DNA of 64,000 nucleotides, from contig NW_005434583.1 of NCBI RefSeq assembly GCF_000315625.1, positions 144,621 through 208,620 on the forward strand, written 5' to 3'. Under the pieces are notes generated by a model. It ran no database searches. It was not told where the DNA came from and saw only the letters and a program-made list of their open reading frames with translations. This DNA comes from Guillardia theta CCMP2712 (Eukaryota > Protista > Cryptophyta). Positions 1-41,549 of the stretch are shown here, piece after piece (position 1 is the stretch's first letter; every line of letters begins with the position of its first letter). Position numbers and translations under genes: made by a program.

Positions 1-3000
1 ATCGTCGACGTCAAGACGTACCTCAGGCTCGCTCCTGTCCCTCCGACGCCCTTCATACACCTCAGCTCCTCCTCGGACTCCCACTCCGTTGCCTCGCATG
101 ACGTTGACCCGATCCGCCCTAGCCCCGGCGTGTACACGTCCAGCCCCACGAAAGACCCGTTGATCAACACGGTGTAGGAGTCCGTGCCTGCATAGTTGCT
201 CTGGTTGCTCACGGACTGCACTGTTGGTACATCGTACGTGTACACGTCGGTCGTGCTCCCTACTATGCTCCCTGCCGTCACCGTCACCAGCTTGCTCCCT
301 CCCCCCCCGTATGGTACGATGCAAGATATCGACGTGGTCGATACCCACTCGCTCGACTCCATCCCGCTTCCCCCTACAGCCCCTGCGCCTGTGTACGCCA
401 CGCCGTCCTCGTAGTACCCTGCGATGGTGAAGCTCCGGTATTCAAGAGACTTTGCGATGTTTCTGGTGTTATTGAGCCCTATGTGGATGCTCATGTCGTA
501 CGAGGTCAGCTCCGTCGTCGACCCCCCGCGATCTCCGACCGTGACCGAGACTCCCTTGCTCTTGCCTATCCCTGCGCTCGCATAGCATACGATCGAGGTG
601 TCCGACTCCCACTCCGTCCCCTCGCTTGCCGTCCCGCCTATCCTCCCTGTCCCCGTCACGTCCTGTAGCCCCAGCCCGCTCCCCAGCACCCGTACCCTCA
701 CGCTCCCCGTCGTGGGAAGATTATGAATATCAGCCACGTTGACGGACGATACTGACGCAACCTCCGCTGATACCGCCTCCGTCATCGACCCGCTCAGCTG
801 CCCTGCTGTGATCACCACGCTCCTGCTCCCCGCCGTGACCCCTGCGGCCTGACATACGATCGAGGTGTCCGACTCCCACTCCGTCCCCTCGCTTGCCGTC
901 CCGCCTATCCTCCCTGTCCCCGTCACGTCCTGTAGCCCCAGCCCGCTCCCAGTCAGCGTCAGCATCACGGACCCTGTGCTCGCGAGGTTTGCTCGCTCGT
1001 CGCTCGCGTCCCGCATGATCATAGGAGCGTCGTGAGACATAGCCTCTGTCAGCGTCTGCGATACCAACATCGTCGACGTCAAGACGTACCTCAGGCTCGC
1101 TCCTGTCCCTCCGACGCCCTTCATACACCTCAGCTCCTCCTCGGACTCCCACTCCGTTGCCTCGCATGACGTTGACCCGATCCGCCCTAGCCCCGGCGTG
1201 TACACGTCCAGCCCCACGAAAGACCCGTTGATCAACACGGTGTAGGAGTCCGTGCCTGCATAGTTGCTCTGGTTGCTCACGGACTGCACTGTTGGTACAT
1301 CGTACGTGTACACGTCGGTCGTGCTCCCTACTATGCTCCCTGCCGTCACCGTCACCAGCTTGCTCCCTCCCCCCCCGTATGGTACGATGCAAGATATCGA
1401 CGTGGTCGATACCCACTCGCTCGACTCCATCCCGCTTCCCCCTACAGCCCCTGCGCCTGTGTACGCCACGCCGTCCTCGTAGTACCCTGCGATGGTGAAG
1501 CTCCGGTATTCAAGAGACTTTGCGATGTTTCTGGTGTTATTGAGCCCTATGTGGATGCTCATGTCGTACGAGGTCAGCTCCGTCGTCGACCCCCCGCGAT
1601 CTCCGACCGTGACCGAGACTCCCTTGCTCTTGCCTATCCCTGCGCTCGCATAGCATACGATCGAGGTGTCCGACTCCCACTCCGTCCCCTCGCTTGCCGT
1701 CCCGCCTATCCTCCCTGTCCCCGTCACGTCCTGTAGCCCCAGCCCGCTCCCCAGCACCCGTACCCTCACGCTCCCCGTCGTGGGCATGTTGGGAAAGTCC
1801 GCCACGTTGACGGACGATACTGACGCTACCTCCGCTGATACCGCCTCCGTCATCGACCCGCTCAGCTGCCCTGCTGTGATCACCACGCTCCTGCTCCCCG
1901 CCGTGACCCCTGCGGCCTGACATACGATCGAGGTGTCCGACTCCCACTCCGTCCCCTCGCTTGCCGTCCCGCCTATCCTCCCTGTCCCCGTCACGTCCTG
2001 TAGCCCCAGCCCGCTCCCCAGCACCCGTACCCTCACGCTCCCCGTCGTGGGCATGTTGGGAAAGTCCGCCACGTTGACGGACGATACTGACGCTACCTCC
2101 GCTGATACCGCCTCCGTCATCGACCCGCTCAGCTGCCCTGCTGTGATCACCACGCTCCTGCTCCCCGCCGTGACCCCTGCGGCCTGACATACGATCGAGG
2201 TGTCCGACTCCCACTCCGTCCCCTCGCTTGCCGTCCCGCCTATCCTCCCTGTCCCCGTCACGTCCTGTAGCCCCAGCCCGCTCCCCAGCACCCGTACCCT
2301 CACGCTCCCCGTCGTGGGAAGATTATGAATATCAGCCACGTTGACGGACGATACTGACGCTACCTCCGCTGATACCGCCTCCGTCATCGACCCGCTCAGC
2401 TGCCCTGCTGTGATCACCACGCTCCTGCTCCCCGCCGTGACCCCTGCGGCCTGACATACGATCGAGGTGTCCGACTCCCACTCCGTCCCCTCGCTTGCCG
2501 TCCCGCCTATCCTCCCTGTCCCCGTCACGTCCTGTAGCCCCAGCCCGCTCCCAGTCAGCGTCAGCATCACGGACCCTGTGCTCGCGAGGTTTGCTCGCTC
2601 GTCGCTCGCGTCCCGCATGATCATAGGAGCGTCGTGAGACATAGCCTCTGTCAGCGTCTGCGATACCAACATCGTCGACGTCAAGACGTACCTCAGGCTC
2701 GCTCCTGTCCCTCCGACGCCCTTCATACACCTCAGCTCCTCCTCGGACTCCCACTCCGTTGCCTCGCATGACGTTGACCCGATCCGCCCTAGCCCCGGCG
2801 TGTACACGTCCAGCCCCACGAAAGACCCGTTGATCAACACGGTGTAGGAGTCCGTGCCTGCATAGTTGCTCTGGTTGCTCACGGACTGCACTGTTGGTAC
2901 ATCGTACGTGTACACGTCGGTCGTGCTCCCTACTATGCTCCCTGCCGTCACCGTCACCAGCTTGCTCCCTCCCCCCCCGTATGGTACGATGCAAGATATC

Positions 3001-3925
3001 GACGTGGTCGATACCCACTCGCTCGACTCCATCCCGCTTCCCCCTACAGCCCCTGCGCCTGTGTACGCCACGCCGTCCTCGTAGTACCCTGCGATGGTGA
3101 AGCTCCGGTATTCAAGAGACTTTGCGATGTTTCTGGTGTTATTGAGCCCTATGTGGATGCTCATGTCGTACGAGGTCAGCTCCGTCGTCGACCCCCCGCG
3201 ATCTCCGACCGTGACCGAGACTCCCTTGCTCTTGCCTATCCCTGCGCTCGCATAGCATACGATCGAGGTGTCCGACTCCCACTCCGTCCCCTCGCTTGCC
3301 GTCCCGCCTATCCTCCCTGTCCCCGTCACGTCCTGTAGCCCCAGCCCGCTCCCCAGCACCCGTACCCTCACGCTCCCCGTCGTGGGAAGATTATGAATAT
3401 CAGCCACGTTGACGGACGATACTGACGCTACCTCCGCTGATACCGCCTCCGTCATCGACCCGCTCAGCTGCCCTGCTGTGATCACCACGCTCCTGCTCCC
3501 CGCCGTGACCCCTGCGGCCTGACATACGATCGAGGTGTCCGACTCCCACTCCGTCCCCTCGCTTGCCGTCCCGCCTATCCTCCCTGTCCCCGTCACGTCC
3601 TGTAGCCCCAGCCCGCTCCCCAGCACCCGTACCCTCACGCTCCCCGTCGTGGGCATGTTGGGAAAGTCCGCCACGTTGACGGACGATACTGACGCTACCT
3701 CCGCTGATACCGCCTCCGTCATCGACCCGCTCAGCTGCCCTGCTGTGATCACCACGCTCCTGCTCCCCGCCGTGACCCCTGCGGCCTGACATACGATCGA
3801 GGTGTCCGACTCCCACTCCGTCCCCTCGCTTGCCGTCCCGCCTATCCTCCCTGTCCCCGTCACGTCCTGTAGCCCCAGCCCGCTCCCCAGCACCCGTACC
3901 CTCACGCTCCCCGTCGTGGGCATGT
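1..3925 (-). repeat. Coding tandem array of ~15 near-identical 267-bp (89-aa) IPT/TIG-like units of four types, in higher-order blocks
   Basis: Identical blocks recur at offsets of 1068 (196->1264) and 1602 (1264->2866), both multiples of 267. Each unit has a G-x-x-x-x-E-x-x-x-W-x-S-x-x-x-[IL]-x-C core (e.g. RIGGTASEGTEWESDTSIVC). Confidence 0.95.
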
Positions 3926-6900
3926 TGAGAAAGTCCACAGTATTCACTGTTGAGATCATTGGTAAGTCCGCAGATATTGTCTCCGTGATGGTATACGTGA
4001 TGATGCTATTTGTGATCACAACGGATTTGCTTCCTAGCAGTATTGTTTGGGCCATACATTTTGCAGCACTATCCGATATCCAAGATGTACTTTCAGTTGC
4101 AGTGTAACTGAATCTTGTTGACAAAGTCTTGTGATCTCGAGCAAAGTTTATACCGATGACTGTCCATGTTCGAGACCCAGTGGATGCAAAGTTCATCGGC
4201 TTTGTGAAATTTTCCAGAGATATAGAAGGATGGTCTGTTGAAAAGAGCTCCGTCAAGGAGCCAGTGGTAATCATTGCAGTCATCACTATTTTCGAAGTCT
4301 GAAATGATCCTGACAACGTCTTGCAAGCAATGGAAGTTTCACTTTCCCAAACACTTGCTTCACAAGAAGACAGACCGACTCGTCCTTTCATTGTCACAGT
4401 GTTGGAACAGAAGAAAGAACCACTCACAGTCATGGTTCTTGCATGTAGTGCTGGGCTATTGTACAAGGTCCTGGTCTCGTTGGTTTGATTGGCAAACTGA
4501 TTCTGTGCAAACAATACGAAGTATGGAATGTAAGGAACGCAGTACTTGTCCGGGGCTGTGTTCGGGTCATCGTTGCACAGGCAGTGGAAATAGCATTTGC
4601 AGGCTGTCCTGTCCCAGACGCCCTTGGGAAACCGATTGCAGGGGTCCAACTTGAGCTTGACCTCGGTTGGGTTGCTGGTGATCTGTTTGGGTGAAAGCGC
4701 AGAAAAGAAGATCGAAGTGTTCGATGTCAGGATGACACTGACTGCGGCAGATTTGTCCATCTTCGTCTGTATGCGATTGCTAGAGCCATTCTGCGCTTCG
4801 ATCCAATAGAAGACCTCTGAATCTTCTCTAACAGTGTTGACTCGCAGCTCGATAACCTCACTGTTGGAGGCCTGGCACAACTCATCCACCTTGACATACT
4901 GCACGTACTTCAGCGCTACCTCAGAGTTCACATCACGTTGTATGTGTATGCTATTCGTGCTGAAATTGACCGCCAGCACTTGCATCGCTCGATTTCGGCC
5001 GATGCGAACGGGTGGATGTTGTACTTTGGCAGTGTCGGTGAACCCAACCTCTCGCACATCAGCGACGAAGATCTGAGCATCGCCAGGCAGATAGTCTCGA
5101 ATTAGAAGCGACCCTGGGAAGTCTTTCCTCCACAGTCGGGTTGGGCCCTCATCCACGTTGTCCCCGATCAAATTTCCAGACGAGCACAGTCCCTGATTCA
5201 CGGTTTCACAAGGAATCCTCATGACGGCCCCGCAGTAACTCGAGCTGTTGTCAAAGATGAATTCGAAGGGTTTAGGTACATAAGCAGGCTTTTCCTCTCG
5301 CAAGGTTTGCTCATAATATAAGACTATCGCATCAATCTCAGCGGGGTCTAACGCACGGGGCCACACGGCAATCTCTGCCACAGCCCAAGGGCTCGTGCGA
5401 TATTTGTTGATGAAGATTTCAGTGTTGACATTCCAATTCCTGTCGATCTTCGACTTGAACGAGAATCGCTGCCCCATACTGGATAACACGAAATATTTCT
5501 CACCAGTGTTCTGCCCACAGAATACATTCCAATTCGTGTGGTTAATCTCGAACCTTCCTTCTGCCTCCATGATGTTCTCGAAAGCTCCTGAATCTTTGTA
5601 GTGAATGTAGAGGATTCCAGTCTGATTCCCCGATACTGCTCTCCGCCTTGCAACGCAACAGATGGTTGAGTCAGAGGTCAGAAGGGGAGCAGGGAACCTC
5701 ACGCTTGTGTCTGCGTATCCTTCTACAGCAGCCATGGGGTAAACAGCGCCGTAACCTGACACGTTCTCAAGCACTGCAAGACCTGGGTAATGATCTCTGA
5801 TGTTGCCTTGTTCCTCTACGAAAGCATGGAGCCTGTTGCCAGAAGAATCTTGCCAAACTTGGGAGCTCTGGTCGAAGTCCCAGGCCTTGAATCTGCCATG
5901 AAGAGCTGAGACAACCTCTCGTTGGTATGTCACTGAGGGAGCTTCCGTCTTCCTGGGGACCTCAAACTTCTGTTGAGCCAAGAAACTGTCTTTCGAGCCC
6001 TCTGTGACTCTCTTGGCCAGTATAGTGAGCTGCTCTGGGATGTCCTCAACCTTGCGCGAGATCGATGCCCTCGAGTGATTGACTTGCAGATTGATGTCAA
6101 AGAATCCAGTCGGCAAAGCTCCATCGAACGAATTTCCAGCAACATCTGTCGATCGCAAGATGTCAAGTGTTTCACTCAGGAATTCCGTCATCTCAACGGA
6201 ATTGTCTAGCAATAGCTTGCGTTGGAAGAAGAGAGAGCCGGCAGGACAGAAAGTTGTGTTGAATGGAGGAAAGCAGACAATGGTGTAATAAACTTGGGAA
6301 AGACTGGAGGCATTCTGCAGCTTCAGGTATGCAAAGGTCGTGAATGAATCGTTCCTTGTTCCGACTAGAAGCGATTGAACCGACGTGGATGCGTTACCTT
6401 GGAAACGAGGAGGCGAAAATCGTCCAACATCGAGGCCGCAAGTAAAGGGAGGAGTGACTTGTGAGTAGACGAACGGCTTGACCGACACGAAGGGAAGTAT
6501 GACAATCTTAAGATCCACGAAGAACCTCGGCAGGTACGGCGTGTCCTTCAGGAAATACCTCAAGGTCAAATTGCCCGAGGAGTGGGAGATCCTGACCCCC
6601 TGGAAGTCTGCGTGCCCCTGTTGCATGTAGACCTCGAACGGCTGGACGTAGTTGTCGTCGAGCTGGTCCCCATCAGAGTTGTAAACTATGAGCTTCACTC
6701 GGAAGTTATCGCTGGTTGCAATCTGACTGATTACGGCTGCATCCTTGCCCAAGGCTGAAATCCGGACAGTAGGCGCAAGAACAACGTCACGTGAATCCAA
6801 TAGAGCAATAGCTACGTTCTGGCCCTCGTACGATACCTTCTGCTGATTCAGGAAGTCCTCCACAATCGAGCTGGAGACCGTAGGGCGAGCATATTCCGAG

Positions 6901-9900
6901 AGTTCCACTTGATATGGAAAGATCGTGAAAGTGGATGAAATCGCGGTCAAATTGTGGAACTGACATCCTGAAGGAAATGAGTCGATGGCGAAAGAGAATC
7001 GATAATAGAATTCTCTGCCGGCGAGGTGCAGGATTGTGAGGTTCTGGAAGACTGCTGTACCGTTGACAAACATAAGGTCAGTCTCGCCAACAAGGTTGTC
7101 GTAGACGTCCTGTGCTCTCATGAGCTCTAATTTCACTCGAAAGCCATCAGAGGTCTGTACAGCCTTGATCAGGTTCTGATCTTCGTCGAGGAGAGCGACG
7201 ACCATCCGGTCAAGGAGCTCTCCCTCGAAGATGATGCTTTTCACCGGCGATATCAGTTTGATGCTCTTCGGCTGGATGAAGAATGAACTCGAGGAGTTGA
7301 TGATGTCCGACACTGTGGACTGCAAGACTTGGAGGTCTGTCGTGCCGTTGACTCGCAGTTGGTATGTCAGAGCAAAGTGTGCACCAGCTGACGACAGAAG
7401 TTTGACAGAGCTCGGCACCATGGCCCCGTGATGGAGGAGGAAGGTAGTCGACCCTGCGATATGAGTGCTGCCGAGCTCCTCTCCTCCAGTTTTGACCATC
7501 ACATGCACGTAGATCGTGTCGTCCAAGTTTGACAGCTGCTGACGTCCGTTGTGCAGGGATGCGACCGGCAAGTGAAGATAATCCCCTGTGATGATGGGAC
7601 AGAGAAACGTCTCGGAAAGGTGGATAAATTGCGGCAAGACTGTTAACAAGCCTGTTTCGGCATGTAGATTATCTAGAGCAAATTCAAACTTGAACCTTGT
7701 CCCAACGACCGTCTTGATCCCAAATGAAAATCTGGTTGTTCCACCTACGACTACGAGCTCTGTTGAACCCACCAAGTATTCATATGTGTAGTCATCACTG
7801 TCGTAGAGCAATTTTGCAGTTATGACGAAAGAATCCTCAGACTTGAGGTCTGTCAGAACGTTGCCTTCAATATCCAAGACAGAGACGTTGATGGCGACAA
7901 CTTCATTGGGACCTTCTCCCGTGTACGAGTTGTAGATGTACGGAGAGTCTTGTTCGACCTTCAAAGCGTGTGGCAAGACAAGAAAGGGTTCAGACAGATT
8001 GCTCAGGACAACTTGTGACTGTTGCAGATCTACCATCTCGAAAAAGAATTGATGCAATCCCCCAGAGTTTGTGAAGGCGATTCCGTCGATACTGAATAGG
8101 TTCCCTTCGATCGCACGTTCAACTCGCTGAAGTGTGACATGGGAGACATGCAGACACCCGTCAAGGTATGAGATGTGCTCAAAATTCTTGCTCAAGGGAT
8201 TCAAGACCAGCACAGAAAATTCAAGATCAGCTTCCATGGGATGTGTTGAAATGAAGTCAACAATCACCGCCCTGGTGTTCAAGTCAAACCCGACGCAATA
8301 GGAGCCGTTCACTTGGCATAGACCGAAAGCATAGCGCAACCAACTCTGAGTCGCAGGCCAAGCTATCTCTATGCCCACAACATGCAGTTGAGACGCGATG
8401 CAACAAAGAGAAAGGCTGGAGCCGCCGATGACGTCAAAGTTGAATGCTGCTCGCACAGAGATTGCCATCTTCACTCCAGGTTGCGAAGAATTGGACTGCA
8501 CATCTGCAAGCACAAACCCTGGCTCAAGCACCTTCAGCGGTGCGGCATCTCCTGCCTTGGATCCTTTCCTTTGTGGGACACGCGAATCATCAGGGCTCAT
8601 GTCCACAGCTGCGATGATGAGGACACCACTGGGTGAGAAGCATGCGATCGAGACGAGCCTCCCAGCTTGAGCCGTCCAAGGGTTGACGAAGGAAATGACG
8701 AAGATGACAGGCTCTCCCGCCAAGATGTCAACGCGTGTCGTCAGATTCACTTGCCCTCCAACACCGAACGAGAGCCCAGAGAAATGAGCGTCATTCGAAT
8801 CCAAGGAGAAGGACTGAGGGCCAGTCAGATTCGTGAGAACGATCGTAGAGGCGCTGGGTATCAGAACATTGCTGGTAATAGTGACATTGATGGAGTTGGC
8901 AACTCCAGGATAGGGATCCGCCTGCCCTATGTTCTTCACGAAAAATTGAGGCGCCGAGACTGAGAACGGATAGATGTTGCTTGGAGTACCATCGACTGCA
9001 GTGCATGTCGAAACTTTTGTCTGCGCGATCTGATAAAATCCCTCTAATCCGCAGGAAGAGTTGTATGAGACGCTCACATAGATGTCCAAAGAAGGAATAC
9101 TTGTTTCTGATTCCGGATTCTGTACAAGAAAGGTAACTTGGGAAAACGCTCCAGCTGCTTGAACGCTCTTCACAGGGAGAGAAATTCTGCTCGTGTCTTC
9201 AGACAAAGTCAGTCCATCCTGTGGATACACTATGAAGGAAGACGTTGGAGAGTAACTCGGAGAGGCCTTGTCGCTTACCAATGATATCGTACCATCGAAA
9301 CTCAATGTTATCAGATCTCCGGAGTGCAGGTCGACGTTCGCGCTGAATCGTAAAGTGATGGAGTTGTTCTGACCAGGGAACGAGGAACTCTGCTGAATCT
9401 CCTTCACCGAGAACTTTGGATCCTCGATCGCAAGACCGCTAGACAGGACTGGATTCAAGTGTTAGCAGATGGAAGCATCATACAGGAGATCTTACCTTCT
9501 CTGACCGCACTACAAGAATCTCGGACTATCTGATATGCGGACACACCTATGGGCAAAGGGCTTCTGACGTCTATCGCAAACAATGCTATGCTGACATTCA
9601 TGTTTCCTGTGCTGGGGTTGGTCAAGTTGAGGGAGACTTCAACTGACTGCCCAGCATGCAACGAGTAGTTGACCGAAAGTTCAACTGTGCTGCCGTTGGT
9701 ATCAACTGATGACACTCCGATGGATTCCTGCAAGAAGCATCCAACGGCCGGATTGCTACAATCCACGTCCATGCAAGCATAGGAGGGATGATTCGATGAC
9801 CCGCTCGGACTGCAGAGTTCGGCATAACCACTGCTTGAAGTGTTCAACAAACAGTTGAATCGCAACGTTGCAAGCTGTGAGAAATTGACGGCTGACGGAG

Positions 9901-12900
9901 CAGAGATGCGGAGGATGAAACCAGTCACCAGGTCATAATTGCTTGACACTGAAGTCCTTAGAGTGTTGTTGGCGCAGGGAAATAGATTGTCGTACACGTA
10001 GCTGACTGCAATCAAAGGCCCGTCAGACGCGACAAGCTGGTTATAAGTCATCCCATACATCGACTCGTTCAGCTGCAACAGGACCGCCTCGCTCTCTCGG
10101 GCAACACAAGGGTTTCTAACTGCAAACTCCAAGTGACAGGCTCCAGGCAGAACCTGGTCATTGCCCGTAACAATGAACAGGTTTCCAGTGACGTTGTCCC
10201 AGTGATCAAGAGAAAGACTGCAGTTCGAGACAAAGGAATTATCCTCATACACAAATGTCGAGGTCAAACCCCGTACAATACACTGATTCACTCCACACTG
10301 AAATTCAGCATTGGAAAGAAATGAAATGCTGATAAGGTTGCGACTTGCAGGATCTCTTGAACTCTGAGCTACCTTCAATTCGGTTACCAGGTAGCTTGAT
10401 GTCTGAAAGGGCTGGGCACAGTTCCCCGACTCAAACTTAGATTTCGAAATAAAATGACTTCCAGAAGATGCAATTTGCACGGAAGATGTAGATATGAAGG
10501 AAGGATTCTGCAGAACGAAAGAAAATTCATACAGAATTCCAGAAGAAAGGGTCGAATTGAGTGGGATGCTTACAATCAAGGTACCCATGGCTCTATACCA
10601 CTTGGCAACAGTAAAAATGTCACGGTTCTGACTGTACAATGGAATCTCTGGGTATGAAGTCCCTGAAGCATACAAGCCTGTGATTGAGATCACACTACCG
10701 TCCTTTCCATAAAGATCAACGTTTGAGATTAAGCTAACGTGAATCCTGTTGCTTGCGCCGACATATGATGATGTCTGACAAATGATCTTAGTTGTGAAAG
10801 CGGCCCCAGTGACAGTTAAATCGAAGGTAGGGCTCACTCTGACAACGGGCAAATGTGAGCTTGATATTGTTGAATTGATCGTGATTCGTATGGCGGAAGA
10901 AAATTCTCTGCAGGTAGAACAAGCTGAACAATTTACTGTCGACCTGAATACTGAGAAGTTCATGGCAAAGGCATCGGCTTCGCTCAAGCCGTCAACCACG
11001 TTACCGAAAGAGTCAACTATAGAAACGAGCAGAGGGGGCAAGGTCTTCCCCAAGGAGACATTAGAGAGCAGTGACTGGCTCAAGAATAGAAGTTGTGAAG
11101 GTAAAACAGTGAAATTCCATGTCGAGGCAAAAACCAACCTTGAAAAAGGAAATTCTGCATGAAACTCTAGCCTGTAACCACGACCAGCCTTCTTTACTGG
11201 TCGTATGCCAGCGAAGCGAGCTGTTCCATTGACGACTGATTCTGTCGTGATTCCTGACAAAGCGGAGGCGTAAGGCATGTAAGCATTCTCAAGCGAAATG
11301 TAAAGGCCGACAGAATTGTTGATGGCAAAGGAAGGCCTAATACGGGTCAAACGGGCAGAGACTTGCACATCCTGAGCAACAGTGTCAATTTTCATGTCAT
11401 AGTCCCGGATCTTGACGTCCAAGATGTCCGGAAAATAGGTGGTAACATTCCATGGAACAAAAAGATTGTAAGGCAAAAGAATAAATTGATTTGAATTTAC
11501 AGTGAAAAGTACAACACTCTCGACATTCAGTTGGAATCGCAAGGTGTATGTGGATGGACACTTTGAGAGAGCTCCTAACTCAATGGAAACGTCTGTGAAA
11601 CGAGCATTTCTTTGTATAAGAGGAATTTGGACAGTCCCGGTTAAAGTGACTGTCGCGTCGGTTGCGCTGTCAATTTCAACTGAAACTGTAGGATTAGATA
11701 GAATATAGAGGTCGAGCGGAAGCTCAGGAATCTTCGGCTCAAGCGTAACTGTGAAGACCCCGAGTTGTTGACCGCAAAAATGGTTTGAGATATTAGATGC
11801 CACCAGAAAACCACCATTCTGCAAACTGAATTCGGGCGATGATACCCAGGCAATGCCACCCACATGCTCAAAGAATAATGTATATTTCTTGCCCATACCA
11901 ATCAAGGACAGCTTCTGAAACGCGAAAGCATTGAAAGCTTGAGAAAAATTTACGATTGTGGGTCCTTGGACGTATCCATGCCCTGTTATGTCATTCTGCA
12001 ACAAGCTCATCTTGATTTTGAATCTATCTTCTGGTATCACAATCAAGCTTTCACCTTTTGAATTGACAAATGTCAACAAAATAGTGTCAATGAATTCGTA
12101 AGAACTAGGAAACAGGGTTCTTGAATCAAAATTAAGCCTTGTTGGAACAACCGTGATATTTGACGTGTTTACGCAAAATCCTAGGTCTTGCATACAGATT
12201 TGCAAGAAAAAAGGTGACCCCGTGAGCAAATCGATGTACAAATCGTCGAATATTGCAAGTCCATCGTTGCCGAAGCCTTGAACTTTGGTACCCATCAGAC
12301 TTGAAGTAACTTCTGATTGATCTCGATTAAACATTTGAGCCGCAACGCTGTAACTTTGAAAACTTACATAATAGTTGTTGCACAAATTCCTATCAAAGAA
12401 GGAGACAGGAATTGATGGATAAATGACTTCTTCAAGATTGACAGAGACGGTTTGGAAAGAGAAACGATCGTCCAAGTAGAGGGCTTTTGGAACAACGTTG
12501 TAGAGCAAATATGCTTCATGGATGAAAATTGTTGAATTGAGGTCGCGGATGAGAAGTCTTACCACAGCTTGATATGTCCCAATAAGACATTTCAAAGTCA
12601 ATCCGGAGAAGGAAACAAAGGTAGTTAAGAAATTCTGCGTCAAATTCCCATGCAAGTGATCGCTGGTCACGTCAGCTCCAGCACGCAGATCTAACAGATG
12701 CACTATTGCAAAAAGTCCGTCTTGTGAATCAATCCCCTCCAAGAGAGTCTGATTTCCAACACGCTGTCTCGTCAAATTTGCCGTCATTAATCCATGCCGG
12801 TCCCAGTCCGCTACTAGCACGCTCGCATGTGCTTGAACCCCAGACGTGGAGAGAGAAAAACCTAAGAAAACACCGAATGGCGTTCCTGCAAATAGAGCTC

Positions 12901-13719
12901 GAAACCCCTGCTGCAATGAAGCCTTCACCTGGTACAGAAATCAGCCAGTCTCAAAGAATCATAGAGCTTTACCCGATTTTCACTCCAACTCAAAGTGATG
13001 TTCTGCCCCAATTGTCTTGACAATTCATCATTCAATGTCATGAGATCATAATGCCCGTCTTTAAGCTTGATCTGATATTCTGTGCCCAAATAGGAATACA
13101 CAAAAATATTGTTTCCAAGGTTTTCACTAATCAAAGTTGTGAAGTCTGTAGCTGCCACAGCTAGCGAAAATGTTGGAACAGGAGCATTTGCTTGCAGCAC
13201 GAAATCTGTGTTGGAGTCTGGCAGAACAATTTTTTGAGGCATTATTGTGAAATCATTGGAAACGAGTTCGATGGAACCTGAGCCGTCTAAGTTCACAAAG
13301 GTCGAAAATTTCAACCTATACCCCGTTCCTGCTTCAAAGGAATCGAGTTGTAATTGAGTATACCGTACAATGCCATCACCTTCGGTACTTTGTACAACAA
13401 TTTTTCCAGAGAGAGGAACTTCCCTTTCTCTCTTGTATAACTTTGCTTGCACGATATAAGAAACTCCTTCACAACATGCCATGCCATATCTATCCACAAG
13501 GCGTAGTTGAACCTGAGGTAGAGCATAACGACCCCTATTCAAGCTCATATGGCACCGACTGTCTTCAGCATGCAACTGGCCGAGAGTACAGTTTGATCCG
13601 AATAGAGATAATTGAAAGTCGCCCCCGGCACACGAGAAATGACAAGGAAACAGCAATAGAATAAATGCAAGAACCCAGCACACCCGGCAAGGGATCTTCA
13701 TTGCGACCACGTATGGCAT
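1..13719 (-). CDS. Giant secreted/surface protein (>4,500 aa, 3' end beyond window): signal peptide, Ig-like repeats, 'QSS.P...N.I' repeats, LamG/ConA-like domain, IPT/TIG-like tandem repeats
   Basis: Exons 13719-12973, 12928-9496 and 9448-<1, joined by GT-AG introns 12929-12972 (44 nt) and 9449-9495 (47 nt, ctaac branch). Splicing gives ...WSENR|VKASL... and ...AVRE|VLSSGLAIEDPKFSVKEIQQSSSFPGQNNSITL. The frame after intron 2 equals the frame of the W codon at 609-611, and the ORF track reports no stop-terminated ORF in that frame, so exon 3 appears open for 9.4 kb. Hydrophobic N-terminus (WVLAFILLLFPCHFSCA). Confidence 0.85.
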
Positions 13720-14994
13720 AGATCAAACAAGAATGCTGCAACGCATAATCGAAACCAAGTTGCAAAATCCAATGTACAACTGAAAAATACTCGAAGACGA
13801 CGACTAGCTTTCGTCGAAATGCTTCAAAAGAAGAATGGGGAGGGGTTCGGTTTCTATGTTCCCAAGACTGCAAGCCAATTCAAGAAAGGAGCAGGTTTGC
13901 TTGCTTGCTTCTACCTGCTGACGTGCTCATCGGCACGAGCTCCTGCATCTCCTTCCCGCTCTTATACCACCTGCACTTTCCTCCATCATCCTCCCCGCCC
14001 GCATGGCTCCTCACAGGGCGTGTCATACAGCACATCTGCCCACCCCTTGATCCGTACTACCCCTACCCCACTATTGAATACCCTACCCCCTCATCAAAGA
14101 TACCCCCTGGTGTTTCCAATGAATTTGTCCTCCTTTTCTCCCCTCAACATGACCACCCTCCCTCCCATGGACCCCCCGACTCTTCGCTCCTAAAGACATA
14201 TACACCCCTCCTCTGACTCCCACCCCGACCCCTCCACAGATCCGATCTGGGTCCGCCTCGCTGTCAAACTTTTTGACCGTCACCGTGGCACTCGGACACC
14301 CGTCCGATCATCATGATGATATCACTGCGTCATGCGGCCGGGCCGGACACTGGCGGCGCGGCGGGTTCACTGGCCGCGATTGGATGCCACCAGACGTGAG
14401 CACACCGATTGGCCTGAGTTTAAAAGTGCCGCGCTGGCATAACTCGCGGTGGTGCCACGGTGGGCATGCTGCACTGCGCGGCATGATCCGCCCGCCCCCC
14501 CCCCCGGTGAAGGCCGTCCGATCCCGCCGTGACTCACTGAGTTGGACCTGACGGAGGCTCAGTTGGCATGATGGGAGCAGGCCGCCACTTTAATTACTTA
14601 ATTACTCGCTCGCTGACCCGCCTCGCGATGGCAAACACGCGCATTAATGCGATCAATGGCCAGCGCCTCGTCTGTACTGGAGGGGGAGGGAGGGAGGGAG
14701 GGGGGGTGAGAGGCTGGAGCGGGAGGAATCAAGAAACTGCTATGTTGCATGATCCGTAGAGAAGAATCTCTTGGTCCGACCAGGAAATGTCTTTCCTTTC
14801 CATTCCCGCCTTCAGTGCAGCTTTGAAGCTAACGGCCCCAGCCCCCCCTTGCCTGCCGACCTTCCCTTACTCTCTTTCCATTCATTTCTCAAGCCTCTAT
14901 CTTGCTTCACCTCTCAGACTTGCTTGATTTCCAGCGTTGATGCTCATGGATGACGATTGCTCTAGCTAACGTGTATGTTTGCAGGGATAGGACA

Positions 14995-17900
14995 ATGGCG
15001 CAGGCGCAGGATCAGCTGGTACGAGTGGTCGAAAAGCCGCTGTCATTGGCCGAGCCATCCCAGCAAGACCAGCGGATCAACGAGACTTTGATGAACTACA
15101 TGGAAGCAGAGAACCTGCTCCCCTCAGAGAGCGAGTCTGCCAGAAGGGTCAGGACGCTAGCCAAGCTCAATGAGATGTGTCGGGATTTCGTGAAGCGAGT
15201 GTACGAGAAGAACAACTTGATGGAGCAATACTCAGAGGAAAACCCTCCATATCAACTTCGAACCTTCGGTAGTTACCGTCTTGATGTTCACTTGCCTGGT
15301 GCAGATATGGATACGGTGATGATCGTCACTCGACACATCCATCGCGATGACATGTTCAACGATCTCTACGTGGCCATGCAAGCTCGCAAAGACATCACGA
15401 ACCTGATCAAAGTCCAGGAAGCTCGTGTGCCTGTGATCAAGTTTCAGATGGATGAGTTCGAGTTCGATTTGGCGATGGCGAGGCTCAGCTATGCGACTAT
15501 ACCGGAGGACTTTGATGTTACCGACGACAAGCATCTCAAGAATGTCGATCAGCAGAGCGTCACTTCCCTCAATGGTGTGCGCGTGACGGACACAATCAGA
15601 AGCCTCGTCCCGACCATGAAGACCTTGAAGTATTGCATCCGAGCGCTCAAGTTGTGGGCCAAGAAGCGTGGAGTGTACAAGAACGTGTTGGGATTCCTTG
15701 GAGGTATCTCACTGGAGATCATGGCCGCAAGGATCGGACAGCTCTATCCCAAGGCTCTTCCAAGCAGGCTGCTGTACTTCTTCTTCTTCACCTACTCTCA
15801 ATGGAAGTGGCCGCAGCCCGTAGGCCTGACCGAGGTCATCGCCAACTCGCATGATCTGAATCTGCCAGTTTGGGGATTCGGAGCGACTGAAATGTCAGAC
15901 CGCCGGCATTTGATGCCTATCATCACCCCTTGCTATCCTGCACAGAATGCTACGGCAAATGTGTCCAAGTCGACCCTCAAGGTGATGCAGGAGGAGTTCA
16001 CCAGGGCCAAGGATATTTGCAAACAGATCCTGGAAGGCAATGCCGAGTGGAGCGATCTGTTTGAACCCCTTGACCCGTTTTCAAAGTATGCAAACTTTCT
16101 TCAGATCCAGGCATCTGCGCAGAGCAAGTCTGATTATGACATGTGGAAGGGCTTCTGTGAAGCCAACATTCGTGCCGTAGTGTCATACATGGAAAAGTGG
16201 CCCGATGCATATTTGGATCGAGCACATCCCATACAGAGGAACTTTGCAAAGCCGAGGCAGCAAGAGCAGGAGCAGTTTGAGCACTTCTGGTTTGTTGGGT
16301 TGAAGTTTGATCAAGAAAAATTGAAAGCAGATGGAAAGAAAGCACCTAACATATCCGGGCCTGTGAGAGAATTCAAGGGGAGGCTCAAAAACTGGGCGCG
16401 AAGGAAGAGTGAAATGGAGCTTCAAGTGCAGTCAGTGAAGAGAAAGGACCTCCCCGACTTTGTTCTCAATCCGAAGGATGAGGAGGAGGCGTTGAAGGAA
16501 GAAGGAATAGAGCAGCAACTTCAAGCCGGTCAGAGGACGAGCACCATCGAAGAAGATGAGAACATGACTCCCAAGAGCGACGAGACTTTAGCTGGAACCA
16601 AGAGGAGCCTGGAAGATGTGGAGAATACAGATTCAGCTGCTGAATCGAAGAAACTCCGAGGAAACGGAACGGAGACGACGGCTGAAGGAGAGAGCAGCGT
16701 TATCAAGGGTGAAGGCGACTCCAAGGGACTAGATGGCAGGGCCGTTCAGATCGCCGAGGCTGATCCTGCCAAGACTCCTCCCATGCCTGCAGCAGATGAT
16801 AGCGCAGGCGTGTCAGATGTCAAGCCTGCAGTTGTGCAACCGATGCAAGTGAAGACCGAAGTGAACGAAAAGATGGGAGCTGAAGAGCCTCTCAATCCCA
16901 ATAACAGCGACGAGCGCGAGTTGGGTTCTGGTCAAGAAGTGAAGGAGGCGGTGAACGTGGATGAGAGCTCTAATGCTTCAAGAAGCGTGACTGCTGAGCT
17001 CATGGCGTCACTTCGCCAACCAGAGGTCAGGACCGAGAACCTTGTCAACCGCGAGAAGATAAGGAAAGAGATGTTCTCCCTCGAGGTTGGAGAGGAGCTG
17101 AGGATCGAGGCGGACTCGAAGAAGGTATTTGTCACCCTTGACACAGGGCATGCAGAGATCTTCGGGTGGGAGCTGCCTTGCGGGGAGACCGTTGAGCTAG
17201 CTCGAACCAAGTTGGCTCTCTACACCTGGCATGGGTGTATGATCTCGGTGCGGGGGGAACCCAAGTGCTGCTATAAGGGAGACACCACGCCGATGAAGAC
17301 GTTTGCCAACCTTCACGCGTACCTGCAGCAGAGTCGCCGCGCAGCCCTCAACTCCAACACCAGCGGGCCGAGGATCATGGTGGTTGGCCCGCCCAACACC
17401 GGCAAGTCGTCGCTGGTCAAGTTACTCCTCAACTACGCTGTGAGGGAGGGAGAGAGGCCGATGATGGTGGACCTGGATGTCTCCAAGGTGACTCGTCTCT
17501 CTCGCTCTCCTGTGTCTGACGCCCTCTAGGCCCGCGCTCTTTTCCTCCCTGGTTCGCTAGGAGCCGTCGCCGTTACCTCTTTCATCTCACCAACGGACAG
17601 CAACTCCATGGCTCATCCCCTCGCCTACTACTACGGTTACAGAGATTGCACACGGTCAAGCGACCTCTTCAAGAGTCTAGTCGATGACCTTGCCACACAA
17701 ATCGCAGCGAGGCAGAACAGTGGCTTTGACGAGCAGGGCAAAGCTGCAGGGCTGGTCATTGACACGTTCTCATACCACGCGAGCAGCCAGCCGTCGTATG
17801 ACCTGCTGGTGGCGTGTGCCAAGTCGATGAAGGCCGACATCATCGTTGTGATGGACATGGACAAACTTTTCTGCGACCTCCAGCGAGACCTGGGAGGGTC

Positions 17901-18581
17901 GGATGAAGGAGGAGTTCAGATCATCAAGCTAGCCAAGTGAGCTGGAGCGGTCCCGTGATGCTGGTCTGACTCTTGCTAGGGGGGGTGGAGTCGTCGTTCC
18001 GGATCATTCCTTCCAGAAGCAGGCAGAGAAGGAGGTGATACAAGATTACTTCTACGGCAGAGAGCGGGAGCTCTGCCCACGTCCCATCGTATTCCCCTTC
18101 TCCAAAGTGAGCATGCACCCCTGCGCTTCCTCTCCCTCCTCCTCCCTCACTTCCCGTCAGTTGCAGTTTTTTCGCACTGCCGCTACCCCGCAAGTCCCGA
18201 AGGATGCTCTGCCGATAGGGATCACAGCGATCGAGAGCAAGATGGAGGTGCAGGTGGTAGAGCCTGACCTGAACTTGGAAAACAAGCTCCTGGCGGTGTG
18301 CGAGAAGTGGAGCGAAGGGATGTACCTGACTTGAGATGACAAGGTTGCTGGCCGAAACCCCTCAGACGACCAGGAGCTTGTTTGCGTTAACGTAGCAGGA
18401 TTTGTACATGTGCAGGTAGATCTTTCCTCGTTGCATTGGTTGCTTGTTTGTCGCTTGCATTGACTGTTTGTCTCGTCAGCGAGTGGATCTACAGGAGGAG
18501 AAGCTCACCATCCTGGCGCCCAACGGGCTGCCGATGCCCTCCTCGAAGCTGCTGGTGGGTGACATCGACTTCTTAGAGTGA
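14995..18581 (+). CDS. Poly(A) polymerase - Clp1 fusion protein
   Basis: PAP nucleotidyltransferase motifs FGSYRLDVHLPGADMDT, ARVPVIKF..FEFDL, SLNGVRVTD, IRALKLWAKKRGVYKNVLGFLGG and HLMPIITPCYPAQN, plus the RNA-binding domain. An acidic linker follows, then the Clp1 N-domain (ELRIE..GHAEIFGWEL..LYTWHGC), P-loop GPPNTGKSSL..LLNYAVR..PMMVDLDV, PGSLGAV, PLAYYYG, GLVIDT, KGGGVV, IQDYFYG and C-domain NVAGFVHV..VDLQEEKLTILAP..LLVGDIDFLE*. Introns at 17488-17529, 17937-17979 and 18107-18160, plus two more before 18480. An upstream acceptor at ~14984 suggests a 5' exon. Confidence 0.93.
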
Positions 18582-19825: not shown

Positions 19826-20172
19826 CCTCGTCGTCATTCCCTTCCTTCTTGCCGGGAAGCTGACATTGCTCTGATCAATCTTCTCCTCCGCGTCTTGTGA
19901 TGGACCGATGAAGCTCGCGTCCATGAGAGCGTCTCGCTTAAGCACAAGGATACGCTCCTACAGCCCTTGGCTCCTCACTCAAACAACGAGACGCTGGCCC
20001 TCTCTCCGAGCACGTTTGACCCACCGAAGTGATGCAGGCAATCCGACTCAGAGGATGAGAGCGAACATGATCAAATCACTGCGAGCTCGTTTCCTCTATG
20101 CGAGGCCTTGACCGGCCTTACTGTACACCCATTTCTTCATCCGTACCCTCCAGCTCTCCTCTCTCGCTCTCT

Positions 20173-23100
20173 TCACATCAGCTGGCCGTCAGCTGGCAAA
20201 ACCTCGACCAAATTCTCCTCCGCTAGCTCCTCGAGATCATCGATCACATGCGTTGTCTCCTCCTCTTCTGCTTCCTGCCTTGTATGCTCTTTCTGCCACA
20301 CGCACATCCCGTCAGTCGCACGCCTCTCCTCCCCTCGCCTTTCCCTGACCTTTGCTTCTTCCTCCGTCAGCTTTTGCACCCTCAACACCAACCGAGTGTC
20401 TCGAAGCTTCTTGAAGAGCCTCTGGTTCTGTAGCGGCAGCGTCAGCTCCTGCGGCTCGCCTTCCGGGAGCTGCTGCAGGTCTACTTGTACAGACCCAACC
20501 AGATCGTCGCTCGTCACCTGAGCACAAGCATCCGTCAGACCTCTCTGCGACCTCCACCAGCCTCCCGACGGCACTCACATCATCCTTGTCCCACAAGGTG
20601 ACGCTCAGAACCTTGGTCTGACTCGTCATCCTCCACTCGAAGTCTTGCTTCCACACCGGGTTGACGTTCTTGTTGATCACCTCCGACGCAAACGTAGACA
20701 GCCCCGAGCACGCGTTGACGAACAACACGCAGTACGCGTCACAGCCCGAGAGCAGGTCCATCCGCGGCAGGTTCCTCGCTTCTACCAGCTGCACCCTCAG
20801 CACTCCCGCAGCCTTCGATGCTGGCGACGTGTAGACTACCTCCGCCTGCTCCGCGCTCTCGACGATGGCAGCCGGCACGAGCTCCTTGCCCATCCTCGTC
20901 ATGAGGTCTGACATGCGCTTTTGGCTGTTGAGAATCTTGAGCTGACTGATCTGCATTGCGATCTGTCGTCTCACGCCCTCCATGTCATGCAGCTCCATCA
21001 GCTCCTCCTTCCTCCTCTCCGCGATCTCCGATGGCTCCGTGCCATAGCGGCTCATCAGGTCGGCGGACGCGACTATCTCGTCTTCACACAGCGTGTAGTC
21101 CTCAGCATCGTCTCCGTCCTCGTCATGGTCTGGATGTACCTTGTCCGACCCCTTCGCTAAGGCTTGTCGAGCAAGAGCAGCAAGCTCGTAGGTATCAACA
21201 GACACGCCACCGGGAAGCAGAATCATCTTTTCTTCCCTCAGGTCGCGCTCGATGCTGCGACGTTGGCTCTCTTTCGACGTCAGAGTCTCTCGCTCTCTTA
21301 TCAGAGCTTGCTCTAGCATCTGGTTCGACACGAACTGCTGCGTTCTCAGCACCTGCCTCAGTCCATGCCAGACAGTCTCCAGCAAGTCCTCCACCAGCCC
21401 GGTCGTCCCCTCAGTCTCTTCCTTGACCTTGGCGTACGAGTCCACTAAGATGGCGAGGAACACGTTGAGCAGGATGAAAAACGCGATGAACAGATAAGAC
21501 CACAGGAAGATGTGAAACGCTCCGTCCGGAGCCGCGTGCGACATCTGTCATCACACCAGTCAGCTTGCCCTCTACCTAGACCGCTGGGCTTGCTCGCACT
21601 CACCGATGCGTAGAACTGAGTCGTGTCGAGACTGAGCAGGAAGATCAACAGCGTCAGGCACGTCGTCGACATGTCCTTCATCCCCTGTCATGCCATAGCA
21701 GGTCAGCTCCTCCCCCACGCCCTCACTCTTCTACTCGCCTCGTACTGATGACCGAACAGCATGTGTCCCACCACGGAGTAGCCGTATAGCACCAGGAGGA
21801 ATAACAACATGAAGTGCCAGAGGTCGCTCGACGCGCGTGCGATGGTCCGGGTGACCAGGCCCATGCGCTCTTGGAAGTCAAGCGACTTGAGCATGCGCAG
21901 CACGAACAGAACGACGCTGACTCCGGCGAAGAAAGAGAAGAGGCTCATCGACCCCGAGATGGTTCTTGCTTGCTCCAGCAGCATCAGCAAGTCCAGCTCA
22001 GCTTGGTTGTCGGTACGGAAATGCCTCGCCTGTGCGTTGCCTGACTTCACTAACGGAACTTGAAACGATTTCCCTGTCTGGACGGTTGTGACGCCTTTCC
22101 GTCGGGCAGCGGACCCGTAGTCGGGCCCGTAGAAGAGGACGGGGTAGTTGGCTTTCATCTCGAACCGCCGACAGTCCTGGTAGTGAAGCAGGCAGGTGAT
22201 CACTGTTCCCCACATGAAGGCGAAGTGAGTCCAGTCGATCCAGTTGAAGGGATGCGACAGGTACCCGCTCAGATTGTACTTGCGGATCTCACCCAGCAGC
22301 TCGCTGACTTCCATGTAGCTGTTGATCAGTAAAAAGACTATGACGAGTACGAAGAGGAAAATCTGCAACCCGGCTTTCGGCCCGGCAAAGAAGTCAACAG
22401 TAAAGGAGTTGACCTGGTAGTCCCATGGTATCCTGCCTGTCTGCTGCCAGTTGAAGATAAACTCATGCAGAGCAAAGATGTTCTTAGGCGCGTTGTAGGT
22501 GAGGAACTGCACTCGCACTTCTTCTGTCGTCCCGTCGATGTAGGAGCCGTCTTCCGCGAACTGAATCATGGTCTGCGCCAGCATCTGCGTGAGACGCTCG
22601 TCGAAGTAGAGCTTGAAGGTGTCTCCCTCTGACGGCATGATGTACTTGGGATCCTTGTAGGCTTGCTCGAAGCCTGTAACGTTGATCGAGGCCTCTGCCT
22701 CAGAGATGAAGCCATCCTTGTTCCGATCGAAGAAGTTGGTGTCGTACTTCTGCGGAAAGAAGCCGATCGGGAAGGACAGCTCCGTCACTCCACCGGAGCT
22801 GATCACGTGCCTCTCAGGCGGGGCGTAAAACTGTCTGGGCTCGAGCTTCGGGTTGTACATGCTGCTGAAGGTCATGAAGGAAGGATCGTAGCCGTACGGA
22901 GTGTCGTCAAGAGTCGTGGACGGACAGCTCACGATGCCTTTCACCGACTCCATGTAGAGTTGGACGTGCTTGTTCACGCTCTGAGCGCAGTCAGCAGGCT
23001 TCATCCTCTTCTGCGAGATCACGATGGCGCCGACGATCCTGTTGTAGGGAGTGATCTCGCGGTTCTTGGGCTCGAACGGCGGGACGATCTTGGGCGGACC

Positions 23101-26100
23101 CTCACTCGCATCCCGATACTCCCACACGCTGAAACGATAGTCGCTCGCGCACGTGGAGCTTGACGTCAGCTTCGCTGTGTCCGCGCACGCGGGGAACTGC
23201 CCCGAGGTCGGACACGTGATGGTCGGACACCTGAGATCGATCGCGTCGCTCGCGTCAACCTTGCAGAAGCTGCAGAGGTCACATGTCCCTAACCCTCCCG
23301 TGCTCGACGAGCCCTGCTGGGAGCAGAAAAGTCCTGTATCGCAATCATAATGCGACTCGCAGGCCTGACCTGTCACACGAGCTGTCAGCGACTGACAAGA
23401 CGGACGAGGCGTCGGGCCCCTCACCTCTCGTGCTCTTGGTGAAGATCGAGCTCGTGCTGATCGACATCTCTTGCGACGCCGTCAAGAGCGGACAAGCCCG
23501 CGTCAGCGCCTCCTGCATCTCCTTACGATGATCCAGCAGCACGTTGATGATGGTCGCCGCTTGGACGTTGGAGGTTGCCAAGACTTCGCCTGACACGTCT
23601 GCAGTCTCCGAGAGCCTAGAGACGTTGACGCTGATCTGCTGAGGGAGCACCTGAGAAGCGTTGAGCCTGCTCTCAACGATCTTCTGCCACTCGTCGAGCG
23701 CAGACAAGTTTCCACACAAGGGGACTACGACGGGGACTACGACAGGGACTGTTGGAGTGGTGGTGCCATCGGACTCCCTTGAAGGAGCTGAGGTGTTGGC
23801 TGAGGCTTCCGCAAGGGTGGAGCTGTTCGTAATGACGGAGGTAGAAGCGTTGTCGGCGGTTGTCGAGGTGATCGCGGGTATCGTCTGGATGTTGACGGGA
23901 AAGAACAAGCGGACACGAGGCGGGTCCAGGAAGTAGTTCCCGTAGTCAGCACTCGAGCTCGGCAGTGTCACATCAGGGTATTTTGCACACGCGATGACCT
24001 TGACTTGCAAGAACGTGCGAGAAGTCGCGCCCTTGCGGTACAGCACAAGCTTGGAGCCATTCTTGACGGTGTTGGGGCAAGAGGCCTCGTCTTCCCAGTT
24101 GGTGCAGTCGCAGGTGGGGGTGGGCCGTGCGTCTGTAGAGAGAGCATACCGCATGTAGGTGACCTGCGAGGTAGTGACCACCTCGACTTCAGCGAGAGAT
24201 AGTCCCACGAGACTGCTGTACAAGGGTCTCAATACGTTCTCCTTGTAAGCTCTGAGAACCGGGGGCCTGGGACTGGTAGGACAAATGGCTCCGGTCCCCC
24301 ACGTTGCACAGAAGCCTCGCTTGTTCACAGAGCTATCCGTAGTGAATCTGATCTTCATGAAGCCCGTTGGTGACGTCACTGGGTTGACTATCTGACTCAT
24401 TGTCCCACACATTGTTTTGAGCAACGTGGGCGTTGGGCTTGTGCAGCTTGCGGTCGTGCAAGAGTAAACTTTGACACTGTCATACCTGCATGTGCTACTG
24501 TACTCCACATCAAACATCTGAAACGTTAAAGACACGTCCGTTGCTGCTGGCGGGGCTATGATCCAGTAGCAGTCCGTCGAAGATGAATAAGACGAGTATC
24601 CTGATGTGACATAGCCAGAAGCGCTTGCAAACGTCCGACTAGTGGCAGGACAATTGGAGACAACTCTCAACGAAGCCTTGTCAGCTTTCTCCTGATGACT
24701 CTCCTTGCTGATGACTTGATAGAGCTCTTCCATCCTCTTCGGGTTTTCCTTCGCCGGCGACTCTTCACGAAGAGCGGAGGAACCAACGTCACGCTCTCCG
24801 CTCGTGACATGAGCATCATGCTGCATGACTCCCATCTTCCTCATTGGAATCGAGCCTCCTGCCTTCTTCTTTGCCTCCTCCCCTTCTTTTTTTCTGACCG
24901 TTCGAGATCTTCTCCGCGCTCTTGATGAAACATCGCAGCTGGATCCCGACTCAATGATCTTCGCCTTGTTCGCTGCCGCGTACGGACTCCCGCTCATGTT
25001 GGGAAGGATGCTGCAGTACCCGACCTGTACAACCCTTACAAGCACGCCAAACAGCGGCAAGCTTACCTCCACTATGGTCTCCAACACACCCGTCACCGAG
25101 TCCTTGAGCTCGATCTTGCCGCTCAGCCCGTACTTGGAGGTCATCAGGTAGCCGACATCTTTCATCCAGATCTTAGTCAGAACCCTCACCGTCACGCCAT
25201 GCCTCTTGCTACCTTCGGGGTTGAACTTGTCGCAGAAAGTACGCATAGCGTCTGTGGGGGATCGACACATGGTTTTCAAGGCGTTCTCATTAAAGACTGC
25301 GTTCTTGAAAATTTCTCTGTGGTTCCCATATTCCATGGCCGACTTCCTTTTTGAGAGAGTCGAGAAAGAGCTGCGAGCCAAGCTCAGCTCATCTACTCTC
25401 GTACAACCTTCACTTACCTTGATGTCACCCTGAACAATGACGTCACCGCTTGATTCTCCACCGCTTGCTCTAAAGACGAGACCTGGTATAGCACCAACGT
25501 AAGCTCTCCGTCGGGAGCCTCGAACGTCAGCTGGGTTGCGTTTGTGTCGGTCTCGAAAAGAAAGTCTCCCATCGTATCGCTGTAAATGTTGTAGAAATAT
25601 CGCACCCTTGACGGATCGCTGTCCAGCGCAGAGTCTTTGAGAGGGAAACCGAGCTCTGACGAGCTTTGCTGGATGATGTCTGCCAGTGTGATAGTGAGCG
25701 TGGTGACGTTCTTGTACTTGCCGCAGTCCTTGATGCATCCGAACCGCCCGAAGCCCGGATACTCGTCGGGTGTATCACAACTTCCATCTCCACATACAGG
25801 ATCGCTGAACACCACCTGAGCTATCCCCCGAAACCTGCCGATCACAGTCAACGTCGGCGATTATACTCATAGCACGATCCCTACCAGGAGTAGAAGTCTG
25901 CAGACGTGCCGAGAAAGCCCGTCGAGCCCAGTCCTGAGTTCATGTAGCCTCCGTTGCCAAGCTGAGGAAGATTACTGAGAACAAGGTCGACGACAGAGCT
26001 CTCGACGTAGTAGGAAGATGTGATGTCTCGCTGCATGAAGAGAAACGAGACGTACACGATGAAGAAGATGGACGTCCCAAACAGCCTCACATACGACGAG

Positions 26101-39906: not shown

Positions 39907-41370
<1,464 letters not shown>

Positions 41371-41549
41371 ACGAGTCCCTTGTATCATTATTATTCATAC
41401 CTTGAATCGTATTCCCTTATGTTACAGCATGTACAACAACCTGAGCGGTCCAATCAAGCCTCCCACAGCCGTAGCAGCCCAATGTTTCCCTTCATATCAT
41501 CATCGGACCGTTCAGGTGCCCTTTCATTCTGTTGGGCTTGTCAGGGGTG

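Follow-up and report, generated by a model that had tools for sequence, protein, structure and literature searches.

The machinery that forms mRNA 3′ ends has a parts list conserved from yeast to humans, and in the studied systems we know of no case where its poly(A) polymerase (PAP) and Clp1 are not separate proteins. A locus in the cryptophyte Guillardia theta CCMP2712 raises the question of whether both factors can be parts of a single polypeptide, and what such a union would mean for 3′-end processing. This locus lies in a window of 64,000 nucleotides (the whole stretch analysed, positions 144,621 to 208,620 of contig NW_005434583.1), to which the positions below refer unless another contig is named. 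A preliminary description of the window had read there a complete PAP running without stop, intron or N-gap through an acidic linker into a complete Clp1, and had proposed either a lineage-specific processing architecture, possibly bypassing or supplementing Fip1 recruitment, or a specialised PAP paralog.

The uninterrupted reading stands up to position 17487. From the ATG at 14995 on the plus strand, 831 codons are open, with 17-42 stops in each of the other five frames, and the gene region is free of N bases. Beyond 17487 the reading had to be amended, the unspliced frame stopping at 17529 and the Clp1 half being interrupted by five GT..AG introns of 42, 43, 54, 48 and 64 nt, whose joints are seen in contigs from sequencing runs. 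The spliced coding sequence of 3336 nt, in six exons and with a single terminal stop ending at 18581, encodes 1111 residues (124.7 kDa); the three Clp1 domains announced are all present, though completed through these introns. A second in-frame ATG is found at 14950, 45 nt upstream, and 14995 is the likely start because the relatives begin there and a contig of the probable RNA run X1 starts at an acceptor-like site near 14984. Exon 1 or the proteins of relatives served as database queries, the spliced model being used for length, motifs and local alignment only. The gene is laid out as follows, each line ending with its support.

14995..17487 (+): exon 1, whole PAP, linker, Clp1 N-terminal domain, P-loop and Walker B (ORF, Pfam, contigs)
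15034..16485 (+): canonical PAP (nucleotidyltransferase, central and RNA-binding domains), aa 14-497 (Pfam; PDB match to bovine PAP, E 1e-106)
15304, 15310 and 15466 (+): codons of the catalytic aspartates D104, D106 and D158 (match to bovine PAP motifs)
16486..17070 (+): acidic low-complexity linker, about 200 aa, net charge -19 (sequence composition, alignment)
16600..16659 (+): bipartite NLS-like motif KR..KKLR, aa 536-555 (sequence motif)
16984..17016 (+): conserved 11-residue linker motif, aa 664-674, just ahead of Clp1 (alignment)
17080..17346 (+): Clp1 N-terminal beta-sandwich, with the adenine-binding Glu kept (aa 701, equivalent to human E22) (Pfam, alignment)
17386..17409 (+): intact Walker A/P-loop GxxxxGKS, aa 798-805 (alignment)
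17470..17487 (+): Walker B, with its catalytic Asp (aa 828) retained and Lys in place of the family Gln (alignment)
17530..17936 (+): exon 2, Clp1 kinase domain (run contigs, alignment)
17764-17775 (+), in exon 2: degenerate clasp, TFSY versus TxGW (alignment)
17980..18106 (+): exon 3, Clp1 lid region (run contigs, alignment)
18161..18295 (+): exon 4, Clp1 C-terminal domain (Pfam, run contigs)
18344..18415 (+): exon 5, Clp1 C-terminal domain (run contigs)
18480..18581 (+): exon 6, Clp1 end and stop codon (run contigs)
17488-17529, 17937-17979, 18107-18160, 18296-18343 and 18416-18479 (+): introns (joints in run contigs)

The surroundings of the gene show some features of their own. Directly downstream, the segment 18848-19681 is an inverted duplicate (94-99% identity) of two parts, 21232-21908 and 20111-20266, of a minus-strand, multi-exon channel gene at 20312-25738, which carries CUB, polycystin cation channel and C2 domains. 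Upstream, the minus strand at 9455-13719 holds long ORFs of low GC content (0.43-0.45), 1157 and 264 aa in length, for which Pfam gave no match. Positions 1-3936 are made up of almost identical tandem repeats, offset from one another by multiples of 267 bp, together with three minus-strand ORFs of about 228 aa. An imperfect tandem repeat is also found at 47340-48308, within long overlapping ORFs.

Both halves of the protein are readily recognised. The PAP domains follow each other in the expected order in exon 1, with PAP_NTPase at aa 14-205 (E 2e-53), PAP_central at 212-357 and PAP_RNA-bind extending to 497, all above the Pfam cut-offs. Since the FGS motif and the three catalytic aspartates are kept, this half is most likely an active polymerase, as far as intact motifs can predict it, and the complete canonical PAP of the first description is confirmed. 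On the other side, CLP1_N is detected at aa 696-784 (E 6e-24), followed by the opening 33 positions of CLP1_P at 798-830, the remainder being encoded past the first intron; together with the Clp1 C-terminal domain, this composition places the half in the Clp1 group and not with Nol9/Grc3. For the related fusion P0002, the nearest solved structure of the Clp1 half is human Clp1 (E 3e-58). An AlphaFold2 model of a related fusion, built on a 7-sequence alignment, reached a pLDDT of 38, and a search of the ESM Atlas gave no usable match.

The linker has the length, acidity and bipartite basic motif initially described. The corresponding segments of the relatives are 143-203 aa long, acidic, almost devoid of aromatic residues and open in one frame only, with an identity of about 26%, as compared with about 64% for PAP and 55% for Clp1. 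Two elements stand out in this poorly conserved background. All the fusion linkers examined carry a KR..KR-type basic motif, which may be a nuclear localisation signal. The 11-residue motif preceding Clp1 is common to all fusion lineages, Baffinella included, and probably forms a short amphipathic helix. A related contig (L014) is 98% identical to a fused relative until a GCG repeat in the linker, after which it diverges and stops; this could be either a misassembly or a truncated copy.

The joining of the two halves is shared with other cryptophytes. The search with exon 1 retrieved proteins (P0001, P0002, P0003 and P0005, in clusters of 5-41 members each) which bear both domain sets at 52-56% identity, the first three being full-length fusions. 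Three environmental lineages possess the fusion. Some of the environmental loci are intronless on genomic contigs and others contain introns. The Teleaulax amphioxeia transcript, whose sequence is in EukProt, has a complete 1102-aa ORF with every PAP and Clp1 Pfam domain, and the genome of Baffinella frigidus contains an intron-rich locus with exons ordered PAP, linker motif, Clp1. The 571-aa transcript of Geminigera cryophila breaks off in the linker and is uninformative on this point. An open frame accompanied by stops in the other frames recurs at five related loci. In a quick tree, the PAP halves of the fusions form one clade (SH-aLRT 100), whose other members are about 55% identical to the Guillardia sequence, and of all the proteins retrieved none outside this clade bears both domain sets. 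No fusion outside cryptophytes was found among the matches listed by a Clp1-side search for long proteins, a Clp1-only search and a profile search of 1.84 billion representatives, these searches being word-limited or giving the best 150 matches, with Goniomonas, Cryptomonas, Hemiselmis, Rhodomonas and katablepharids not identified by name. The best explanation is a single origin of the fusion, no later than the ancestor shared by the sampled cryptophytes (Geminigeraceae, Baffinella), in which it took the place of free Clp1.

An origin from the red-algal endosymbiont was also considered; it is unsupported because the red-algal best match, from Rhodosorus, fell outside the fusion clade in the quick tree. 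Two observations were made in passing on the environmental sequences. A PDZ-domain gene is head-to-head with the fusion in two lineages (L015, L022, L023). The protein P0121 (NCBI MGB1593178.1), labelled Clp1/GlmU and assigned to a ‘Promethearchaeia archaeon’ metagenome-assembled genome, is a linker plus Clp1 fragment that falls in the 90% cluster of P0001, and probably reflects eukaryotic contamination of an archaeal bin.

Which partners are available to such a protein can be seen from the gene content of the genome (87.1 Mb, 669 contigs searched). With two Pfam models, no second Clp1 locus was detected. The CLP1_P model gave no Nol9/Grc3 even at E 10, in an exon-wise search of a kind that could miss an intron-split or divergent gene. 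Pcf11 is encoded on contig C37, with its CID, zinc fingers and an RxWF..W motif, which we take to be of the type by which yeast and human Pcf11 bind Clp1. Fip1 is encoded on C139, where its core domain is preceded by an acidic stretch; a loss of Fip1 is thereby ruled out. Two stand-alone canonical PAPs, intron-containing, with intact catalytic triads and no Clp1, form a tandem pair on C28 at about 167500-173500 (L042); they are only about 27% identical to the fusion and sit on a very long branch of the quick tree. A PAP-only duplicate that is 70-77% identical to the fusion lies on C92 at about 41370-43000 (L004, L043), where its open frame ends in the linker. It is without the FGS motif and two of the three catalytic aspartates, and looks like a recent duplicate, either a pseudo-enzyme or a young pseudogene. 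Inside the fusion clade, the quick tree and the motif alignment showed no stand-alone PAP that is intact. RtcB is present at two loci, so that tRNA could be ligated without recourse to a Clp1 kinase.

This inventory bears directly on what had been proposed. The requested census thus returns a stand-alone PAP pair, Fip1 and Pcf11, and no detected stand-alone Clp1. A bypass of Fip1 finds no support in the gene content, and the retention of Fip1 argues against a full bypass; the fusion may nonetheless supplement Fip1 recruitment. The idea of a specialised PAP paralog is partly supported by the existence of a separate intact PAP pair, but the fusion is unlikely to be a side branch because it holds the sole Clp1 detected in the genome. 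The lineage-specific architecture based on a single PAP–Clp1 polypeptide fares best, being supported by contigs that bridge the linker, as detailed below, and by the conservation across cryptophytes. On balance, the locus probably encodes one nuclear protein of ~125 kDa, in which an active PAP would be tethered to a kinase-dead, ATP-binding Clp1 that ties the polymerase to Pcf11 and cleavage factor II (CF II).

A neutral origin of the link provides an alternative that we consider unlikely. In such a co-expression unit, the halves would work as usual, PAP through Fip1 and Clp1 through Pcf11, and the link would simply fix a 1:1 stoichiometry and a shared nuclear import, being kept since Clp1 had lost its own promoter and start. 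The retained Fip1 is in line with it, and the linker, poorly conserved and variable in length, resembles an ordinary PAP tail with its NLS; the truncated C92 duplicate also held an open frame for a time. Yet the 11-residue linker motif has been kept in all lineages, the fusion clade contains no intact PAP standing alone, and the C92 copy has lost catalytic residues. Moreover, both halves serve one complex, so that joining them covalently through 140-200 aa would keep PAP attached to CF II regardless of any selection for it.

Whether the protein is made in one piece depends first on the transcript. Spliced contigs bridge the linker in two probable RNA runs from different studies, which provides, at the contig level, the RNA evidence that had been called for. 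In X2, one contig of 3460 nt extends from upstream of the start codon to 18248. In X1, a contig runs from 16322, inside PAP, to 18583 and spans the whole linker. The RNA status of both runs is an automated guess with which the spliced joints agree, and contigs speak for joints and not for single molecules or transcript starts. The X1 depth is 6.9 over the PAP part and 15.2 from 16322 onward, a step that fits a 3′ bias but is also consistent with a shorter transcript. X19, the sole RNA run analysed as raw reads, has essentially no reads on the gene and is silent on transcript ends.

The depth step could thus be taken as a sign of two products, arising from an internal promoter in the linker or from proteolysis of the linker, with free PAP and free Clp1 doing the work. 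In-frame methionines at 17002 and 17071 could then start a free Clp1, and a long disordered linker would be accessible to proteases. We regard this possibility as quite improbable: no stop codon terminates PAP, the step falls in the PAP RNA-binding domain and outside the linker, a single X2 contig covers both halves, neither methionine is conserved across the fusions, and the translation shows no 2A-type NPGP motif.

The state of the kinase motifs defines what the Clp1 half may contribute. Four motifs have been defined for this family, Walker A GxxxxGK[ST], Walker B [DE]hhQ, clasp [TSL]xGW and lid arginine (PMC5900568). Only the first is intact here. The Walker-B Gln is replaced by Lys or Arg in all fusions, and the clasps of the relatives (CFPY, CFGY, TFPF) are degenerate, like the one in exon 2. 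Exon 3 has no arginine at the positions equivalent to human R288, R293 and R297; the three are likewise absent from four relatives, and a fifth lineage also lacks R288 and R293. In the same alignment, most unfused Clp1 proteins retain the lid arginines. With the Walker-B Gln, the clasp Gly-Trp and the lid arginines lost and the ATP-binding residues kept, these motifs make it most likely that the fused half is a pseudokinase scaffold of the yeast Clp1 type, still able to bind ATP. Yeast Clp1 is structural and has no kinase activity (PMC3245249). Human Clp1 mutants in R288/R293 are kinase-dead, yet bind Pcf11 and support cleavage, and ATP is an allosteric ligand acting through human Clp1 (PMC8887130; 10.1101/366336).

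A bifunctional RNA end-modifier, whose Clp1 half would still phosphorylate RNA 5′ ends (of the downstream cleavage product for Xrn2-type decay, or of tRNA exons) while PAP tails 3′ ends, appears accordingly very improbable. The P-loop Lys and Walker-B Asp are indeed kept in most lineages, and the fusion is the sole Clp1-family locus detected, with no Nol9/Grc3 found. Nevertheless, one lineage has replaced the P-loop Lys by Arg, a Grc3 mutant in the equivalent clasp Trp is almost inactive (PMC5900568), the human double lid mutant has no activity (PMC8887130), three of the motifs are degraded, and the two RtcB genes could ligate tRNA without any kinase. As for an assembly or annotation artefact joining neighbouring genes, metagenome gene callers do split or truncate the fusion gene at introns, but its probability is practically negligible given that the independent X12 assembly (unspliced, probably genomic DNA) tiles the region and matches the window across the single-copy linker, the one discrepancy being an extra base at 16386 in a contig of depth 3, that spliced contigs bridge the open linker, and that this linker recurs in species about 45% diverged. 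Neither a stop nor a misjoin in the linker was seen in these assemblies.

A mechanism can be proposed for the tethered PAP–Clp1 protein. The fusion would stay whole, its flexible acidic linker acting as a tether, and the Clp1 half would bind Pcf11 and thereby enter CF II, which would leash PAP 1:1 to the cleavage factor. Each CF II assembling at a poly(A) site would then bring its own PAP, held near the cut, which could support cleavage and subsequently elongate the 3′ end so formed. Cleavage depends on PAP, and in mammals it requires CF II as well (PMC8887130); the fusion thus unites two components that are needed in one and the same step. With yeast PAP, the physical tether as such outweighs the details of the contacts (PMC8559680). 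Fip1 would probably work in parallel, or serve the separate PAP; given Fip1 and the intact stand-alone pair, most mRNAs may be tailed by another PAP than the fused one. A bolder and tentative proposal is that cryptophytes have been rewired, their main PAP being a subunit of CF II that travels with Pcf11 on the Pol II tail, instead of being recruited by Fip1/CPSF after cleavage. The separate PAP would then act on other RNAs, and Clp1, having no lid, would behave like the human lid mutant, with which some cleavage occurs even when no ATP is added.

Two points are still unsettled in the field: why cleavage needs PAP, and what Clp1 does there if its kinase activity is dispensable. A natural fusion, long kept, of an intact PAP with a probably kinase-dead Clp1 suggests that the two lie near each other in the active complex and that Clp1 plays a structural role. 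It also offers a ready construct for reconstituted 3′-processing systems.

Both halves belong to known families, and, as far as could be found, their joining in one protein has gone unremarked, though the Teleaulax sequence is in EukProt. Keyword and phrase searches, covering part of the papers in PMC, returned no description of a PAP–Clp1 fusion, and the consulted parts of two Clp1 surveys (PMC6777427, PMC10598085) mention neither the fusion nor Guillardia, in agreement with the initial impression of novelty within this part of the literature. According to these surveys, complete cryptophyte genomes carry no gene of the Clp1 family, a result probably explained by the entries being nucleomorph genomes. 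A 2019 UniProt tally counts one cryptophyte Clp1-family protein, which is absent from the rows of 1026-1169 aa (PMC6777427). The record can now be corrected: a cryptophyte nuclear Clp1 exists, behind a PAP.

Several known systems can be compared with this assembly. The canonical nuclear PAPs (PAPOLA, yeast Pap1) share its three domains, three catalytic aspartates and low-complexity tail with an NLS-like motif, but the tail of the fusion runs on into a whole Clp1, and a long stem branch separates it in the tree. The large multi-domain Clp1 proteins of more than 1000 aa (PMC6777427, Saito et al. 2019) are of similar length and also fuse Clp1 to other domains; they come mostly from fungi, protostomes and trypanosomatids, and the rows of 1026-1169 aa carry neither a cryptophyte nor a PAP annotation. 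With the Clp1 of CF II/CF IA (human CLP1, C. elegans CLPF-1, yeast Clp1), the fused half has in common three domains, the P-loop, the adenine-binding Glu and a Pcf11 partner, whereas it sits behind PAP and has lost the clasp, the lid and the Walker-B Gln, a motif state closer to kinase-dead yeast Clp1 than to human Clp1. A further parallel is the tethering of PAP to CPSF/CPF by Fip1 (PMC8559680, PMC9512404), where a long disordered acidic tether holds PAP flexibly, as is predicted for the fusion. The tether of the cryptophyte protein would differ in being covalent and anchored on the CF II side, and not on CPSF30/Yth1.
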